NCBI GenBank assembly: GCA_973895155.1
Contig: OZ316898.1
Span: forward strand, 19,727,292 to 19,791,291
Direction: 5' to 3'
DNA: 64,000 nucleotides
DNA from: Marsupella aquatica
Lineage: Eukaryota; Plantae; Marchantiophyta
Shown here: in pieces, positions 13,524-26,613 of the stretch
Layout: the number at the start of each line of letters is the position of its first letter
Numbering within the stretch: position 1 is the stretch's first letter
The notes under the pieces: generated by a model
Database searches by the model: none
Told to the model about the DNA's origin: nothing
The model's input: only the letters and a program-made list of their open reading frames with translations
Made by a program: the position numbers and the translations under genes

Positions 13524-15273
13524 CTACCAGGGGCCGGAACTAGTCCGTCGTAACCTCGCGGACAAGACGTCCTTCTTCTTCTTTGCATTAATGCTTTTCA
13601 GAACCAGTTTCTTGTACTTTTGAATGTCCTGCTCCTGAACATACAAGAAATATGCAAGAATTAGATTGATCTGCAGAGTCTCATCCGGGAAATTCTTTGC
13701 GTACATGCTTAAAATACGACAGGAGAGATTTGACAGAACACGCGACAGAAGCAAATGATAGACCAGAAGAAGGTGCATGCTAAGTACCCGCTGAGTCTTC
13801 AGCCTGTTGTTTTCTTCCTTCAATAGTGTCACTTCTGCCTCTAATTCAACGGTGTACGCCTACACATGAGTCACAAACAAGCGGAGATCAGAGCCTGGTA
13901 GACTATGAGGTGGGAACACATGCAGCCCACAGAAAAATATGAACAGTTTGGTAAAATTGCTAGAGAATATCAACCTGTTTCCTGGCTCGGGACCTCGCTG
14001 CAGACTCCCTATTTTTAATCATCCGTCTCTGTCTCCGTTCCACGACCTTCTCCACAGGCCCGTCCGCACCTCTCTTCCTCCCTCGCATGGATCCGTCAAA
14101 ATTGCCCACGGGGGAGAGGTTGCCATGACTATTTCCCACTTCATCAGAGCCAGCACTATGTGATCCAGGGGAATTCGTAGCAAGGGCAAGAGCCATAGGG
14201 CCTCCCATCTGGATACCCAATTGCCCCAACCCCGGCGCTAGAGTACTGGCCATTCCGGTGTAGCCCCCATTGGAGCTCATGATGGGCTGCATTCCCCCGT
14301 TGGCAACCCTTGCCTTCATAGCGTAGGCATCGGCCTGCGCTTGAAACAGCTGCTGCTGTTGCTGCTGGTGAGCCTGATGCTGTGCCTGCTGCTGGCTGAT
14401 ATTGCGCAGCCAATCGACCTGGCCCTGCACTGCTTGCGGCTGCGCGATTTCACCGTTCGCAAATCCCGTGCCATTTGCAGGCGAGAGAGAGAGCGTCGCA
14501 GCCAATGACCCTGGCCCCATCCTTTCCCTCCTATCATTCCCTCGATCACTAGGACCCCCGGCTCCATTACTGCCAGTGTAGGGGGCAAAGAGAGAGTAAG
14601 GAGTCGAGGGCTGTGCCGCAAGTCCACCATCCTTGACAACCCCAGCCTTCACCAAAAACGCTTCCAGTGTCATTTCCCCATAAGTCTGGCGCCGTGAATC
14701 GCTGCTGGTCATGCCAGGGCCCGAGCTAGTGCCAGCATCCGCTTCCGCCTCTGGCGCGAGGTTGGGGTTCGTCTTTATAATGTCCCGCCACACTTCGTCT
14801 ACGGTTTTTCTGCTTATTTGCCTGGAAAGGCTGAGAGAGCCCTGTCTGGCCAAACTAGGCTGTCTAACGAGGCCCTTCTCAGAAGCCATGTGGCTGCTGG
14901 AAACCAGCTCGCCCGGCCCGGCATCACCGTCGGCATCACCACCCTCCCCGCTGCTTATCGACATCGCAGAAGCCATAGCTTGGCTCTCCTCCATAGTCCA
15001 GATATTTTTCAGAAATTCGTCCATGTTCATCGACCCAAATGCCTGCCCTGGGCCTCCCGGCTCCATCAGGGAGCGCTGCAAATCATCCAACGTGACCGAA
15101 TATATCGAACCCTGCCTAGCCAACGATTGCACCCTGGAAATTGAGCCTCCTCCCCCTCCTCCTCCAGCCATGAGTGCATTTCCGTTTGCCGTGCCGCTAC
15201 TGCTCTGTGCATGGTTTGCCATCGGTCGCGCATGAGCCTGCTGTGGTGCCTGCGCTTGAGATTGCAAACCCAT
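13524..15273 (-). CDS. ABI5: Group A bZIP transcription factor (ABI5/ABF-like); exons 15273-13975, 13859-13788, 13634-13524
   Basis: C1 LARQGSIYSVTLDDLQ, C2 LARQGSLSL..SRKTVDEVWRDI, C3 RQTYGEMTLEAFLVKAGVV; bZIP VVERRQRRMIKNRESAARSRARKQ|AYTVELE; C-terminal RRTSSGPW; typical 72-nt exon. Confidence 0.93.
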
Positions 15274-15318
15274 CGAACTCCACCACAATCCGTCAGCACA
15301 TCCTCTCAACGCAACCAC

Positions 15319-15848: not shown

Positions 15849-16550
15849 CCACACTTCCCCCTTCTAAAGTTACTCCTAGCTACCACTCAAAAGTACACTA
15901 AAATATATACTACAGGAGTTTTTCCCCCACCATCATGGAGCAAAATGGCGGGGGTAAAAGAGAAAAGCGCCACACTTCCTTCCCTTCAGAAAGTTTACCC
16001 TAGCTACCAGTAGAAGTAGTTGCCCTCCTGAACATAATGGAGCAAAATGGCAGGGGTAAAAGAGAAAAGCGCCACACTTCCCTTCAGAAAGTTTACCCTA
16101 GCTACCACTAGAAGGAGATTTCCTCCTGACCATCATGGAGTAAACTTGCAGGGTAAACGAGAAAAGCGCCACACTTCCCTTCAAAAAGTTTACCCTAGCT
16201 ACCACTAGCAAGTTTACCTCCTGATAATCATGGAGTAAACTCATTTTTTCCTGATAAGCATGGAGTAAACTCGTTTTTTCCTCATAATCATGTAGTAAAC
16301 TTGCAGGGTAAAAGAGAAAAGGGCCACACTTCCCTTCAAATAGTTACCGTAGCTACCACTAGAAGTAGTTTTCTCCTGAAAATCGTGATTGGAGCAAACT
16401 AGTTTTTTCCTGAGAATCATGGAGTGAACTTGCAGGGTAAACGAGAAAAGTACCACACTTCCCTTCAAAAAGTTACCCTTAACTAAGTGATTTTTCCTGA
16501 AAATCATGGAGTGAATCATGGAGGAAGGTCTCAGGGTATAAGAGAAAAGT
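15849..16550. repeat. Degenerate tandem array of ~6 units (97-155 bp) upstream of the ABI5-like gene
   Basis: ccacacttccc...aagtttaccctagctaccact...catggag...gggtaaaagagaaaag recurs at ~15849, 15970, 16072, 16169, 16324, 16453. Confidence 0.88.
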
Positions 16551-17320: not shown

Positions 17321-18292
17321 ATACCAGTATAGTAAAGTCATGTTTATAGGCCATTGTGTGCCGGTCTTAGTATATAGTAAGGGGTCCCAAACCTCAAGAT
17401 TTGATGGACTTTAATTTAATTGGTAAGGTTACCAGCCAATAGAGTTATGAACCTATCAAATTCATAGTCCATAACTTTTTGGCATGAAGATTGGTCCATG
17501 ACCATAAGTCACTCTGGAGGTTAGTGACAAAAAGCTTTTACATAAACCCTGTGAAATAGCTATGGCCAAAAGCCATCATTTGTAACTATGAAGCTTGAGA
17601 GTCCCTAGTAAAGTACTCTTTGCAACCTCTTGCATTGAGGGCCATAATGCTCTGGTAACAAGAGCCTAAATTTTCATAACAAACTGATCCCACTTTGCAG
17701 GATCTGTCGTAATAAAATGTCTCAACATCAAAGAGCAGGAGCCTGGGGAAACTAAGAGGAGTTATCCTTAGGCGAGGGTTTATGACACGTCTCCTGGAAT
17801 TATCTAAGCTCAAAATTGACCCCATAGGTATTGTGAAAGGAAGTGAGCACCTTCTGTAGTTGCCAAGCTGCTTGCCATTTTCCTCTGAGACAGGTTCTCA
17901 CCTGCTTGCTCCTGGCCAATCTTTGGGAGATTGAATTGCGTTTTTGCTCCCAAGGTTTCCCAAGGATTGACGAAGGTGTTTGAGTACAATGCTGGCTTAA
18001 CTCCTGCTGTGTTGCATGTACCAAACTTTCAATGTTCTGACGCATCTGCTATGGCTTCGTCCATTTTGTGTGCTTCCGTCATCTTCCGAAGGTTCATTTG
18101 TGGTTCGAGGGCCTTTACTTATGAATTGTTGGATTTGGAGATTGTAATGGGTTTGTTCTCTTCCCAGTCCTGGCTGGACTCATTGATGCCGCCGATAAAT
18201 TGAATCCCGCTCATGTTTTCATCAGAGGAAGCAGGTCAAGATGTCATTAGTCTTAGTCTGGGCTCAATTTGATTGGGCTCCAGTGACCATGA

Positions 18293-18549
18293 TGAAGAAA
18301 AATTTCTCATGTATATTAGTCCCCTAATGATGGGTCATTAAGTACAGGTCTGGGACGAGAGAGTCCCGCAGAATACAAGTCGATAAGGAAAGCATGACTG
18401 GACAGGAGAGTTGCAACGAGACTAGACAGAGCGGACAAGAGCTGCATGCAGCGTGCCTAATATAACCAGGCAGCCCACCTTAAACAAAGGGAGCCTGGTT
18501 GTCCTAATTAATCCCGGTCAGCGAGATTTACGTATGCTAAATTCCAACA
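18293..18549 (-). repeat. Complete 3' LTR (257 bp); only 67 bp of the 5' LTR remains (21312-21378)
   Basis: 18483-18549 equals 21312-21378 with one mismatch. Confidence 0.88.
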
Positions 18550-18710
18550 CCCCCTCTCGAGCTAGGCTCGATAGAAACTCAGACACAGCTGTCATAGAGG
18601 TGAGGTAGAGAATCTAGACAATCAATAAGCGGTGAGTAAGGTTGATAATGTACCCCGATGGGTAGAGAGCTCAATCAAAGACTAGTCGATTGAGTGTCAA
18701 GCAAGGGAAG

Positions 18711-19196
18711 ATGGCCCAGGAGAATATCACACTGCGAGAGTCATGTATCTTTTTGTTGCTGGCAGTGATGGGATTCGTCTCTACGTTCCTGCGATATCTA
18801 CACAGTTTGTTGCAATCGGCTGAGGGGCCAGCAGATTCTGCTGGTGACAATCGTTCAGAGATGGTGAATGGATCAGGGCTAAACGAGAAGTGGCAGTCTC
18901 AAGAACTTGTAACAGTGCCAGATGTCACAACAGTGTCAAGTTGAACGTCAGATGCAGTCCGTGCTCCTCCACTAGACAGCCCAGTTGGCCTAAGTGAGAT
19001 GCCGCCGCGGCGCTACTATGCAGTAGTGGTTGGATTTCGACCAGGCATCTACTTATCGTGGGAGGAGTGTCAGCCTCAAGTCTCAGGATTTAGAGGCAAC
19101 AAATTTAAGTCGTTTAGAACTCGATCTGAGGCAGAAGAGTATTTGAGCCGTGAGACTAGTCTGCTTGGTCGGACTGGTGGAAGACAAATGGTGTAG
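18711..19196 (+). pseudogene. Antisense extra ORF in the copia element: N-terminal TM helix, linker and RNase H1 N-terminal/Caulimovirus P6-type hybrid-binding domain; one in-frame TGA at 18942-18944
   Basis: ORFs 18690-18944 and 18999-19196 share a frame and are joined by 18 sense codons. YYAVVVGFRPGIYLSWEECQPQVSGFRGNKFKSFRTRSEAEEYL fits the Cauli_VI/HBD consensus. Confidence 0.78.
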
Positions 19197-19256: not shown

Positions 19257-21123
19257 TCACGTTATAATTGAAGATGGTTCGATCGTTGCAAGTTCTTTTG
19301 CTGACCTCATTCCGATTGCTTGCCGATGATGCTCAAACTTGATTCTCGGTAGAACCTTCGTGAGGATGTCGGCTGGTTGATCATGTGTAGAGACATGTTG
19401 AACTAAAAGCTCACCAGCTAGTACTCGCTCTTGTATAAAGTGGTGATGAATTTCCAGATGCTTGGTTCTTGCGTGGAAGACAGGATTTTTTGCCAGTTTC
19501 AATGCACTGATGTTATCGCAGCTTAGGTGCACGTCCTGCTGAGTGGGTATATGAGCAGTTGAGAGATCAGATGCAATCTTGGCATCCTTGCACAGTTTTA
19601 TATTGGCTGGTGTGAGTTTTTGTTGTCGTAGCTCCTCAATAAGGCATTTCAAATAGACACCCTCTTGAGCTCCATCTGACAATGCCCGGTACTCAGCTTC
19701 AGTGGTTGACCTAGACACCGTGGGTTGCCGCTTGCTGCTCCATGTGATTGGTCCTGAGGCAAGGGTGAACAGGTACCCTCCTGTTTACCTTCTCGTATCG
19801 GAGCATGAGCTTCCCCAGTCTGAATCTGTGAATCCTTGTAGCTTAATGTCGGGATATTGTTGAAAGAATATCCCAAGGTCTTTGGTGTTGCTGATATACC
19901 TGAGGATGTGAATTGCTGCTTCCCAATGGGCTTGTTGGGGTTGAGACATAAATCTATTGACAAGTCCTACCGCAAACAAGATGTCGGGCCTTGTATTGGT
20001 CAAGTAAATGAGTTTTCCTACAAGTTGACAATATGTTGTTGAGTCGATATTGCTGGTGCCAGTCTCAGCCGAGAGTGTGAGCCCTTCGGGAAGTGGAGTT
20101 TTTGTTGATCTGCACTCGATCATATTGTAGTCTCGCAGCAACTGTGTCGAGTACTCAGTTTGATGCATGAGTATTCCTTGATTATTCACCGAGAAGTCCA
20201 CCCCGAGGTATCTTTTCACCGGCCCTAGATCTTTCATTTCGTACTTTGCGCTCAGCTTGGCCTTGAGATGATTGATCAGATCCTTGCTGGTACCAGTGAT
20301 GAGAAGGTCATCGACAAACAGCAGTATCACTACTAATTCTCCATCCCTTTTACACACATAGAGATTTGGATCAAGAGAGCTTCGTTCACAATCAATTGAA
20401 CGAAGAAAGGAATCTACCTCATCATACCATGCTCGTGGACTTTGCTTGAGTCCATATATGGATTTGAGAAGTCGACATACTAGATTCTCCTTCCCCTTGA
20501 CTTCGAAACCCATTGGTTGATCCATGAATATAGTTTCCTTGATTGTTCATCGTTACCACGTCCATTTGAGAGATTGGCCATCCGTACGCAGCAGCTAAGG
20601 CAACTATAAGCCTTACAGTGGACCATCTCACCAATGGTGCAAATGTTTCCTGAAAATCCAGTCCCGGTCTTTGCTCATTCCCTCTGGCCACTACTCGTGC
20701 TTTGTGTCGGATGTTTCCCTCATGATCTATCTTATTCCTGAGAATCCACTTGGAAGAGAGCGATTTCTCACCAGGTGGAAGCTGAACCAAATCCCATGTG
20801 CCGTTGCACTTGTGAGCATCCATCTCTGATTTCATTGCTTCTCTCCATTGCGTGTCTTGGATGGCGTCTTCGAGGTGGATGTCGTTTGAAGAGTCAGCTA
20901 GTAGTGCAATGGCAATATCCTGATCTGCAGTTGCAACATACATATGATGACCCAAAAAACGGTGATTATCTGACCTGATTCGAGTGGAAGGAGGTCGGCG
21001 TGGCGGTAGAGGCTTGGATTTGAGTAGTCGCGTGGTGATTGATGGAGCCGATATATCTGGAGTATGCTGGAGTGGCTCCTGTACTTCTTGATCTTCCGAT
21101 TGATTTTCTGCTTGAGGCCCCAT
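19257..21123 (-). pseudogene. Copia pol remnant (RT + RNase H) with frameshifts near 20545 and 19785; gag/PR/IN deleted
   Basis: KARVVARG, ETFAPLVR, QMDVVT, LKSIYGLKQSPRAW, LFVDDLLI, TRPDI, SRSTTEAEY, HARTKHLEIHHHFI, QPADILTK. Confidence 0.93.
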
Positions 21124-23600
21124 GTCTTCTCTTTCTTCTTGTTCTAGTGTTGAGTCCCCCTCTTGAGGGTTAATGAGACCCTCACTGACGAGAGAGGGAG
21201 ATGGGGTTGATGAGATTTGGTCATCAAAAGAAAATACATCAAAGAGACTGATAGATGAGTGGGGTACGGAGGAGAAGTCCCCAGGTGTGGTTTCAGGAGC
21301 CTGGTTGTCCTAACAAAGGGAGCCTGGTTGTCCTAATTAATCCCGGTCAGCGAGATTTAAGTATGCTAAATTCCAACACATGAATGGAAAGAAATCAGAG
21401 GGATTGACACGCCACATTGGGGCTGGATTGGGTCTGCTTGTATATACGGAAATCGTTGCCTTATGCTGCTCTCAGTCAGATGGTTGCCTAAACAGCATTT
21501 GACGGTGCGAATGAATGCTATTTTCATATTGGTATGTATTGGGCGGGTGGAAAGGGGAGGTGGGTACCTAAGTTTGCTAGTTCATTAATTACAAGTGCTG
21601 TCCAAGATACCATTGATTATATTCTGGATGAGGAACCGAATTATGAGCATTTTATAGCATGCGATACGAGTGTTTGTGCAAAGTGTATTTGATCAAAATT
21701 AGAAAAAGGATACTATGAAATATTCACTGCTGTTCCACAGGAATTCGAGGGCCATAGAAGCGAGGATGACTGGACTCCTTTTCTACTACTCTATTTATTA
21801 TCAGTTTCATAGAACTTTATGCACTTCTTTTTCGCCTGCGTGATGCACAGATCATTGCGGCTCTGAAGGGTGCTTTACTATCAGTTAAACGTCAGTCTTG
21901 TTTACTTTGAATTGTTCGAACCGATTCAATTTGAGACAGATCGAGCCTCTGTACTTTTACAGAAGTGAGATGAAAAACAAGTCTGTCATTTGATTTTGTA
22001 ATTCTGGCACCTCCTAGTTGTGGTCGGTCTTGGGGAAAGGGCCCTGGGGCATCCCTAACAACAATCATGACTTCAAAGTAAATCTCATTAAATATCTGTG
22101 TGCCAACGATGATGAAAGAAGGATACTTATTCTCCATCGGGGTTCTCAGGGACTTCAAGCTTCATTTTGTTTTCTGTGTCGTCGCAACAATGCAAGAAAG
22201 CGAGCATGATAGTTCGTCGGGGTCCAATTAGTTTAGCTTTGAGTGCAGGTGGGCACTTTGCCTTCTTCATTGTTTAAACACATGGGACTTCAAATGTTAT
22301 TATGTTTCAGGTACTCAAGTAGGAAATTGTTCAGTGATTTTTTGCCCACTTCTTTTTAGAAAATTTCCTTCATTCATGTTCACGTTCTGTAAAGCCATCA
22401 GCTGAAAGCGCTTCAGCTAGGAACTGGGAAACTCCCAAACTATACTTAAGCATCAGGATACTCCTGGAAATGGTTTCTGCCGACGGTTGAAGAGTTCGTA
22501 ATGTTTTGGGATCCACTTAGACCTCAAACACGGAGGTACGTTTGTTCTGTCAGGTCCCACTAGATGCGTTCCTTTCAATCTTCATGAAAGTAGTCCTCAA
22601 GGACGGTGAAAAAAACTAAGGACAATGCAAATCCTACCTTGGACAAAGTCATGAATGCATTTGAAGTCCAGTGTCAAATGCATTGAAGAATACCAAGCCA
22701 ACACTACACTGCAAATCAATATTAGAATAATCCAGGGTCTGAAGACAAGGTTGGACAAAAACGTTTAGCTAAAATTTGGACATTCCTCTCAATCGTTAAA
22801 TAAACAGATGGGATCACAGATTCAATGCATATATGAAATGCAATTCACCGATTTGAAGATTTCCTCTCACTAGCCAACTGAACAGATGAAAGCACCGATT
22901 GATTGCATATATGAAAGAGAGTTCACTCAGGAACCGGGAAGTTATATGCGAACACATGTTCACAACAAGCTTGCTTATAGGAGATCTCATTCTCTTTGTC
23001 AGTGCAAATTAGCTTTCTAAAATTGAAAGACAGTACCTGTCTCGGTAATTGAGCTCATTCTAACATCATTAGAGTGTGAAGTCGCAACTTGAAGAAAGAC
23101 GGCACAATTTCACTAATGATGACAACCGAAGGAAAATCGTCTTGCTCTTACGTGCCTTCGATGCTCAACGCTCAACTTCCCAACGGCTTGTGCCTATAGT
23201 AATGATCGTATGTGAATACCTACACTTCGTTTCTGTTTCATTTGTTTTCCAGTCTGCGATTCCAGTTTTGATTAGGGTTTCATTCTTTTCCAGCTTTCCC
23301 AGTCTAGGGCTAGTCATTTGCTTTTGATTGTTCAAGTTCCACATATTAAAAATTGGCTTCAAAGCATGGCATCGTAGGACCATAGAAGCACTGTCTTGCA
23401 AAAATATCTTTGCCTCCACATCCAGGCAGAGCAGCCATTGTCTAATTGCAGTCACCACTGGTCAACAATCGTTTGATCATAGTTAGTCAATTCTGGAAAC
23501 ATTGCAAATTTACAATTCAGATGTATTTATCAATGAGAACCATATGTCGGCTGTAATATGAAGTGGAAGCACCTCACAAGAATAAACGAAACTCACGACT

Positions 23601-24848: not shown

Positions 24849-26490
24849 GTCAATAGAATTCACACGATGACGGTGTATCAATTATGCAAAAGCAGAAAGA
24901 AAAAGTTTACGAGGGTTCCAAAGACGGAGATGAATATCAGGCAGAGATCGCGGCCACTAGGGAGCGGGAGTTCTCTCCAGTGCACCTTTCAAATTCAGGG
25001 AATGCCTTGATGAAGCACTACTTTGAGCAAAGTAGACATTTTGGTTATCGATAGTCGTTGATCAAATGTAGTCTTTAATCAAATGATAGTCTTATTGATT
25101 ACCCACTCCATGACGTTGTGTGGGTAATCAAACCCAAGGACAAAGAATCAATAGAGAAGAATCGATGTACTTGCACTAGTTTTATTTCTAGAGTCTGAAA
25201 GTAAATCTATGGGCAATAGGAAGGATCCAAGAGGGTGTATATTCGACCATACTTCCTGAGAACATATCAAGACTAGTGCTGACGAAGCTTCCGGTGACGT
25301 TATTCGTAGGGATCAATCAATGGAAACTGTTGCACAATTACAAGTTGCAATCAGGAATAACTGCAGGTTAGCAGAGGAAGCAATGCCTTATATGTTGGAA
25401 TTTTTACAGAGATGCAAGGGAACTGGCCCAGTCGAGTCCAGATACTCAAAAGGACGAGTCTAACACAGCTATTGCACAAATTCGAGATGTTTCACTTTAG
25501 GGAGTCTGTGATATCCCCTGCCCGTCAATTAACTCTCGACCTGACTCTCAAAACCAGAGAATACCTATTCAATTCGTTCACCCAGCTAAGAAAACAGTTG
25601 GCCATCCTTTGAGCTGCTCAGCCGTAATAGGCATCTATGGTCCTCTGGTATATCCAATCTTCGACTTCGAGTCAGATTTGCTATGACAATCCCCAACCAG
25701 CAGAACGACCAACCGTCACGATGCTTATCAACGAGATGCTCAGATGATAAGCACAGGAAACGAAGGAGTTCCTGTTACTCAGAACAACGATAGTACAAAT
25801 CACCAGCTCCTTGGCAAGCATCACCAGCCACCCAAAACAGAGGCACCTTCATACCTAACGTCAGAGAATGGCTTCATAGATCGAATTGTGGGTAAGGAGA
25901 CACCGTTACAACAATAAATCGCACCTGAATTGTGACATCTCTTAGGTCGAAGCGGTCCCCTCGTCCTGCCTTGCCTAGCTTGTCTGTCACGAGCGCCAAT
26001 TGCGCCGAACTTCAGGACCGCCAGTGCAAACTATCGGCTTCGAGCCAGATGTGGGTTTTTTTTGCCAATTTGGACTTCTGGCGATTCTCGTCAAGTCGCG
26101 GGAGCCACACCATGGCATCCCAGCTCGGATTGTAAAGATCTACTTTACATGCGTGCCCACTGCCCAGTTCTGCCCCAGTCCGAAGCCGACTTTTGTCTTT
26201 GGCACGGTCTTCCTAGCACTCTTTGTATGTCAATCTGCCTTTTCCCCTTCCTTCCCCCCCCCCCCCCCCCCCCTCTCCCCAGCCCCCCTTTATTATTGGG
26301 AACCTGTCTCCTGGTTCGGCGTCTTTGCCTTGTGGCAACTGTGATATAAATCGATATATATCTGCCGCTTCTAATTCTACTAACTTGGACAGCTCAGAAA
26401 TGGGACTACCTACAGTACATTGCCTGCTTCCGTGCCACTGCCGCCGACCGCAAGCCCGCCCTCCTACAGTAGCTGCCTTCCTGCCGCTTG

Positions 26491-26613
26491 CCTAGCTGCC
26501 TTACTACCTTATTACTACCTTCCTACCTTGCCGCCTTGCGTGCCTGTTCCTGCCTAGCTGCCTTACTACCTTATTACTACCTTCCTACCTTGCCGCCTTG
26601 CGTGCCTGTTCCT
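26491..26613. repeat. Direct duplication, 2 x 62 bp
   Basis: cctagctgccttactaccttattactaccttcc... at 26491 and 26553. Confidence 0.85.

Follow-up and report, generated by a model that had tools for sequence, protein, structure and literature searches.

The window analysed here, a stretch of 64,000 nucleotides from the liverwort Marsupella aquatica (contig OZ316898.1, positions 19,727,292 to 19,791,291), contains on its minus strand a Ty1/copia retrotransposon with the duplication TCATG at both ends. Inside this element, on the plus strand, lies a frame that starts with a hydrophobic helix and ends with a hybrid-binding domain (HBD) of the RNase H1 type. The features of the element are, in order of position:

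18288-18292 (no strand; 18292-18288 when read on the minus strand): target-site duplication TCATG, 3′ side; the same 5 nt stand at 21383-21379
18293-18549, minus strand: 3′ LTR of 257 nt with TG...CA ends, TGTTGGAAT...TTCTTCA
18550-18558, minus strand: polypurine tract (PPT) GAGAGGGGG, which abuts the 3′ LTR; a related element, L004, has the matching tract GAGAGGAGG before its LTR
18711-18941, plus strand: N-terminal part of the accessory ORF, with the start MAQE..LRES, the hydrophobic helix (residues 12-30) and the start of the linker (from the translation, the family alignment and the codon model)
18942-18944, plus strand: in-frame TGA in the variable linker, the sole lesion of the ORF in the window; in intact relatives with 153-165 codons the frame runs without a stop
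18945-19196, plus strand: C-terminal part of the accessory ORF, with the rest of the linker, the HBD (Pfam match 19011-19142), a short tail and the stop at 19194-19196 (from Pfam Cauli_VI and PDB 3BSU)
19257-21311, minus strand: copia pol remnant, with the end of the INT-RT linker, RT and RNase H (RVT_2, E 8.8e-25 and 3.4e-36)
21312-21378, minus strand: truncated 5′ LTR, its first 67 nt, fused directly to pol sequence (from its match to the 3′ LTR)
21379-21383 (no strand): target-site duplication TCATG, 5′ side

The accessory frame (18711-19196, plus strand) thus comprises 77 codons, the TGA, 83 further codons and the terminal stop. It is antisense to the copia element and tail to tail with pol, between the pol stop codon (19257-19259, minus strand) and the PPT/3′ LTR. 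A first-pass annotation of this DNA had described a 161-codon frame in this position and orientation, inside an element bounded by target-site duplications, with the TGA at 18942 as its one lesion and 18 open codons behind it; all of this was borne out when the coordinates were read again. The ORF begins MAQENITLRES, followed by a 19-residue hydrophobic stretch, and the 18 open codons past the TGA lead to an ATG at 18999, the start of an intact 65-aa ORF.

The annotation had also recognized an intact-looking RNase H1 N-terminal domain, and the Pfam comparison agrees: residues 5-48 of the 65-aa ORF match Cauli_VI (PF01693) over model positions 1-44 of 44, with an E value of 4.4e-21 and 75.3 bits (cut-off 21). 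In the PDB, phmmer matches the domain to 3BSU (E 8e-8), 6VRD and 1QHK. Cauli_VI is the only Pfam match; no catalytic RNase H domain (PF00075) follows the HBD before the ORF stops. Throughout, the pieces of the ORF on either side of the TGA were searched and aligned separately, and no mended or consensus sequence was used. An exact look-up of the 65-aa ORF returned no record, and a homologous-protein search with it was empty; the length window of this search excluded the 150-250-aa relatives that a search of the whole library later recovered.

The host was taken in the first-pass annotation for a complete copia element; it is instead an internally deleted remnant with 67 nt of 5′ LTR, from which gag, protease and integrase have been deleted. 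Its assignment to Ty1/copia follows from RVT_2 in the window and from the order of domains in relatives (gag, PR, rve, then RVT_2), together with the end features of the window copy, namely an LTR with TG...CA ends, a PPT and a 5-bp duplication. With the primer-binding site (PBS) deleted in the window, this site, TGGTATCAGAGCC, a match to initiator tRNA-Met, was observed in L004 alone. The 3′ LTR has its initial 67 nt repeated at 21378-21312, with one mismatch within a 68-nt match, and the PPT/LTR junction is 91-93% identical to those of two relatives, L001 and L003. Within the pol remnant there are a single frameshift, near 20546-20548, and a single in-frame stop; aligned by tblastn with the pol of the relative L005, the remnant matches in two frames with 48% and 65% identity. 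At the deletion junction (21296-21334, minus strand), the LTR text AGGACAACCAGGCTCC-CTTTGTT is followed by a second AGGACAACCAGGCTCC and then by pol text. This 16-nt direct repeat suggests that a template switch or a microhomology-mediated deletion eliminated PBS, gag, PR and INT together with the remainder of the LTR. Judged from its sequence, the window copy of the element is dead, lacking gag, PR and INT, and the accessory gene, with a stop in its linker, is non-functional. Because decay extends across the host element, the TGA in the accessory ORF belongs to a general, fairly light decay.

Other observations in the window lie outside this element. On the minus strand, positions 13960-15318 form an open frame of 452 aa with abundant Gly, Ser and Gln and with a bZIP basic region (RRQRRMIKNRESAARSRARKQ) at its end, probably exon 1 of a host bZIP gene of the ABI5/ABF type. 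An 88-nt repeat occurs three times at 16106-16477 (75-89% identity, spacing 129-155 nt), and a perfect 62-nt tandem duplication lies at 26489-26612.

Related copia loci with the antisense gene

A HMMER search with the 65-aa ORF against 1.8 billion cluster representatives returned thousands of RNase H1-type matches, among them four single-domain proteins that are 69-78% identical to the query and carry the domain at the C-terminus. The window ORF and these four relatives share one layout: a start of the form M-A-[QH]-E..[ST][LIM]R, a helix LLLA..GF.S...YLH, a variable linker, the domain, and a tail ETS.L.R.GG. For three of the four (L001, L003 and L004/L005), a minus-strand copia pol ends 50-71 nt from the gene; the fourth, encoding P0049 on L002, has an intact ORF on a contig that ends before any pol. 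One of the four, P0137, whose contig is L004, is found in four sequencing runs, beside an intact 1489-aa gag-PR-INT-RT polyprotein. Copia pols likewise adjoin the genes of two weaker relatives, P0153 and P0154, in L006/L007 and L008. The Logan contigs among the relatives derive from the runs SRR18067351/352/379/441/462 and SRR33208269.

We also approached the family from the opposite side, searching with the pol of L005 and examining the loci that encode four of the polyproteins closest to it. In three of these loci a Cauli_VI gene stands antisense right behind pol: L011 (another Logan run), L012 (a JGI metagenome) and L013. Their pols are 47-52% identical to the L005 query and 40-43% identical among themselves. 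Altogether, ten further copia loci in public assemblies have the same kind of gene in the same place, with pol identities of 40-77%; the accessory ORF is intact in six of the ten (153-205 codons), and three carriers adjoin intact gag-pol polyproteins of 1489-1527 aa. The gene stands 50-100 nt from pol or overlaps its 3′ end in L001, L003, L004/L005, L006/L007, L008, L011, L012 and L013. Beyond the HBD, a C-terminal tail extends for about 15 residues in the window ORF and for 10-20 residues in intact relatives. The annotation had proposed that the gene belongs to the element and moves with it, and had associated relatives without the segment, or with random stops in it, with a one-off captured fragment. 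The first proposal is supported and the refuting outcome did not occur: ten further loci have the gene, intact in six of them, and it is under strong purifying selection.

Several of these loci differ in their state of preservation. L004:1-5467 is a circular unitig with identical 30-nt ends that contains the whole internal region, one LTR of roughly 288 nt, the PPT and the PBS; it appears to be an intact copia element with the accessory gene, in which either the two LTRs were collapsed in assembly or a 1-LTR circle was captured. In L003:76-831 the accessory gene has decayed, with the conserved Trp changed to Arg and the stop lost, giving an extension of about 70 codons. The gene in L013:4200-4712 has decayed as well: helix and domain are separate ORFs, the domain ORF overlapping the end of pol by 77 nt. 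A 900-nt contig of JGI metagenome 3300056830 encodes, at L009:101-505, the 134-aa protein P0163, which has the helix-linker-HBD layout; there is no pol within 400 nt downstream of this gene. Scanning metagenomes with the alignment of the four proteins yielded 408 pattern matches, none of them confirmed.

Selection, descent and loss

Over the span of the ORF, the accessory frame has no stops in seven related loci (and one in the window), as opposed to 2-22 stops in each other frame. Differences between lineages fall mainly at third positions, with counts of 196/195/528 at codon positions 1/2/3 in the domain and 159/79/214 in the helix. Pairwise NG86 estimates for the domain give dN of 0.14-0.37 with dS saturated. 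Under a Goldman-Yang model, omega is 0.03 for the domain (48 ungapped codons, 11 lineages; omega=1 rejected with 2dlnL 340) and 0.24 for the first 33 codons, which comprise the start and the helix (5 lineages; omega=1 rejected with 2dlnL 27); because synonymous sites are saturated, the absolute values of omega are rough. Under these models, neutrality is excluded for both parts. The linker cannot be aligned between lineages. The bias toward third positions, the single stop-free frame of six and an omega far below 1 together indicate constraint at the level of the protein, and we conclude with high confidence that the frame is an accessory gene of a copia clade, protein-coding, selected and present across the family.

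To place the carriers relative to one another, we used a quick maximum-likelihood tree of the RT-RNase H region, in which W denotes the window copy. W, L005, L006, L008, L011 and L013 form one pol clade (SH-aLRT 99), and L012 is adjacent to it (SH-aLRT 90). Nested inside the carrier clade, next to W, L005 and L006 (SH-aLRT 99), is L010, a gene-less element from Calypogeia fissa, the liverwort that is also the source of the nearest named pol in the search with L005 pol. L010:5653-10978 (GCA_965154635.1) is a complete copia element with 245-nt LTRs that are 100% identical and a 1519-aa polyprotein; the accessory gene is absent from it, the space between pol and 3′ LTR being only 174 nt. Since this element is young and has no gene, the gene is dispensable for at least one lineage. 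Domain identity is similar in size to pol identity, and the two increase together (Spearman 0.57, from non-independent pairs). The simplest reading of these patterns would be one old gain, co-descent with pol and at least one loss.

These data bear on two simpler accounts of the frame. It could be a one-off capture of a host RNase H1-like fragment that is now decaying, and the stop codon in a dead element and the empty homologue search with the 65-aa ORF are what one would expect of such a fragment. The same gene is present in ten other copia loci, however, and is intact in six, with an omega of 0.03 in the domain; furthermore, the nearest HBDs outside such elements belong to RNase H proteins of oomycetes and fungi, present in multiple copies, and reach no more than about 40-55% identity. 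We therefore reject a one-off capture with near certainty. Alternatively, the antisense RNA alone might matter, as a regulatory or dsRNA-forming transcript, with the open frame incidental. Antisense transcription from LTRs is common (PMC7264820), which lends this idea some plausibility, but an RNA-only function does not account for the third-position bias, the one stop-free frame among six or the low omega, and we regard it as highly improbable. A selected protein-coding gene thus remains our reading of the locus.

The predicted protein and its known counterparts

The gene encodes a product of about 150-200 aa. An AlphaFold run on P0012, the closest intact relative (80% identical to the window over 56 codons of the HBD region), with an 11-row family alignment predicts one helix at residues 2-44 (pLDDT 91-98 over 11-40), a disordered segment at 55-97 (pLDDT <50) and a compact beta-beta-alpha-beta-alpha domain at 101-159 (pLDDT 87-97). 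The helix-linker-HBD architecture described in the annotation is thereby reproduced in a model, and it recurs across the family. By Foldseek, the predicted domain superimposes on 3BSU, in which the human RNase H1 HBD is bound to a hybrid (target TM of 0.9, rmsd of 0.7 Å, 40-42% identity), and in a viral library it matches transactivator/viroplasmin proteins of several Caulimoviridae.

The likeness to the RNase H1 HBD (PF01693; 3BSU for human, 1QHK for yeast) extends from the full Pfam match and 40-45% identity to solved domains to four of the five contact residues compared. The binding surface of the human domain consists of W43, K59 and K60, and hybrid binding is lost with W43A (PMC6846478). 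Aligned by phmmer with 3BSU, the copia protein has the same residues as human Y29, W43, F58 and K59, so that the Tyr, the Trp, the Phe and the first Lys are shared, whereas the second Lys, K60, is replaced by Ser; the F58 equivalent is His or Gln in some members of the family. The two proteins differ in organization. RNase H1, a host gene product, has its HBD at the N-terminus and a catalytic domain after it; the retrotransposon-encoded copia protein has its HBD at the C-terminus, after a hydrophobic helix and a disordered linker, and has no catalytic domain.

Caulimovirus P6/TAV, the protein behind the name Cauli_VI and a suppressor of silencing, likewise carries the domain in an accessory, non-polymerase protein of a plant reverse-transcribing element. 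Its HBD has been modelled on 3BSU (PMC7102451). TAV is nevertheless a different kind of protein: it is about 420-540 aa long, includes other domains as well and has its gene on the sense strand of a Ty3/gypsy-related pararetrovirus, whereas the copia protein has 150-200 aa and is encoded antisense. The two have only the domain of about 45 residues in common, 14-46% identical where aligned, and good alignment with TAV models is confined to the HBD region, so the copia protein does not share the large multi-domain organization of TAV, with its transactivation and further RNA-binding regions.

In its position, the gene resembles antisense ORFs known from other LTR retrotransposons. Extra ORFs of this orientation lie between pol and the 3′ LTR, as a lineage-wide feature, in RIRE2, Grande, Retand and other Ty3/gypsy elements of the Tat lineage (PMC7264820, PMC4408406, PMC6317226). 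The copia gene agrees with these ORFs (aORF-3R or eORF-3′R) in that it is on the opposite strand, lies between pol and the 3′ LTR and is common to related elements; by this placement, it joins the known class of LTR retrotransposons with an antisense accessory ORF. It differs from them in its host, as they belong to Ty3/gypsy elements, and in its domain, as they encode PMD or transposase-28 domains or none that is recognized, in place of an HBD. A survey of plant LTR elements counted extra ORFs of at least 250 codons only, and a 160-codon ORF would therefore have been missed; the only extra ORF that it lists as a lineage feature of copia elements is the sense-strand eORF-3′F of SIRE, and the supplements of this study (Neumann et al. 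2019) contain no Cauli_VI or hybrid-binding term (PMC6317226). In a non-exhaustive coverage of the literature on PF01693 or the HBD with LTR retrotransposons and on Marchantia copia ORFs, no description of this domain in LTR retrotransposons was found; the same domain has been captured by a fungal Helitron (PMC4289320).

Two further comparisons help define what is unusual about the gene. Tat-lineage Ty3/gypsy elements carry an extra RNase H (aRNH) domain, with no HBD mentioned (PMC4408406); this too is an acquisition related to RNase H, but it is catalytic, sits inside pol and is on the sense strand, whereas the copia elements have a non-catalytic module in a separate antisense gene. HTLV-1 HBZ and HIV-1 ASP are, like the copia gene, minus-strand protein genes at the 3′ end of an LTR retroelement. 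Both are driven from the 3′ LTR, and ASP is small, hydrophobic and membrane-associated. They overlap env or other coding regions and have no sequence or domain kinship with the copia gene, for which a promoter in the 3′ LTR is only presumed.

Possible role of the protein in the element

The reading that we favor, with a confidence that only somewhat exceeds even chances, is that a copia clade has a conserved accessory gene, decayed in the window copy, whose product would bind nucleic acid duplexes in the service of the element. The mechanism that we envisage would begin at an antisense promoter in or beside the 3′ LTR that drives the accessory gene. The protein would bind A-form duplexes, either the RNA:DNA hybrids of reverse transcription or dsRNA formed from sense and antisense transcripts of the element, and, having no nuclease domain, would leave them uncut. 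Its N-terminal helix would hold the bound duplexes at a membrane or in an oligomer. The element would benefit in that its intermediates are kept from host RNase H1 and from Dicer-type silencing, or are concentrated where particles assemble. This duplex-binding mechanism on behalf of the element is tentative, an account that we consider possible and short of probable. The replacement of the K60 equivalent by a non-basic residue, and of F58 by His or Gln in some members, weighs against it. Of the interpretation given in the annotation, an accessory gene that belongs to the element is thus supported, and tethering at membranes, shielding of replication intermediates or a counter to silencing may be its role.

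Two points in this mechanism allow other interpretations, one concerning the helix and the other concerning who profits from the protein. The helix may be an oligomerization or partner-binding helix, with Gag or particles for example as its partner, rather than a membrane anchor, and the protein may be soluble, in particles or in the nucleus. Pointing in this direction, AlphaFold draws a continuous 43-residue helix that is longer than a membrane span, the charges flanking the hydrophobic part give no clear topology signal, and in distant members (L009, L011 and L013) the helix is charged and only amphipathic, with Hessa-scale simple sums of 3-9. Membrane anchoring therefore cannot be a universal feature of the family. 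In seven lineages, however (W, L001-L004, L008 and L012), the helix is transmembrane-like: it contains a stretch of 16-19 residues with 0-1 charge, the Kyte-Doolittle means of its 19-mers are 1.9-2.6 (2.04 for residues 12-30 in the window) and thus above the classical threshold of 1.6, the Hessa-scale sums are -0.9 to +1.7, and the hydrophobic stretch is under selection. We take a purely non-membrane helix to be a serious minority possibility, if an unlikely one. As to who profits, an HBD without a nuclease could equally inhibit reverse transcription or help it, and the antisense gene might serve to limit the element's own copy number, the HBD and the element's own RNase H or RT competing for the same RNA:DNA intermediate, or the antisense RNA feeding silencing. 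There is a parallel in Ty1, which limits itself through p22 and antisense RNAs. In the copia elements, the convergent layout would make the antisense mRNA fully complementary to the genomic RNA, the domain lacks a catalytic partner, and a lineage has tolerated loss of the gene (L010, with its identical LTRs); for plant aORFs, antisense transcripts have been discussed as possible inhibitors (PMC7264820). The present data do not separate inhibition from help, but strong purifying selection over a long time in many lineages fits a benefit to the element more easily, and we regard self-restraint as improbable. A duplex-binding role for the element therefore remains the account that we prefer.

To our knowledge, copia elements are regarded as structurally uniform and as encoding gag-pol only. 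Against this background, a bolder version of our reading, which we consider doubtful and offer as speculation, is that a clade of bryophyte Ty1/copia elements keeps its own nuclease-free, membrane-tethered, hybrid- or dsRNA-binding antisense protein across about 50% amino acid divergence of pol, as a counter-defence or a factor of the replication compartment. If true, this protein would parallel the P6 viroplasmin of caulimoviruses by convergence and be the first product of a copia accessory gene with a defined fold for nucleic acid binding. A small antisense gene that has co-evolved with pol over deep divergence, built on the same module as the caulimovirus viroplasmin, suggests that reverse-transcribing elements of plants repeatedly need to deal with RNA:DNA or dsRNA duplexes outside the particle. 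The gene also demonstrates that a 250-codon cut-off leads surveys to overlook real accessory genes, and it offers a compact handle, accessible in a model liverwort, on how retrotransposons face host RNase H1 and RNA silencing.
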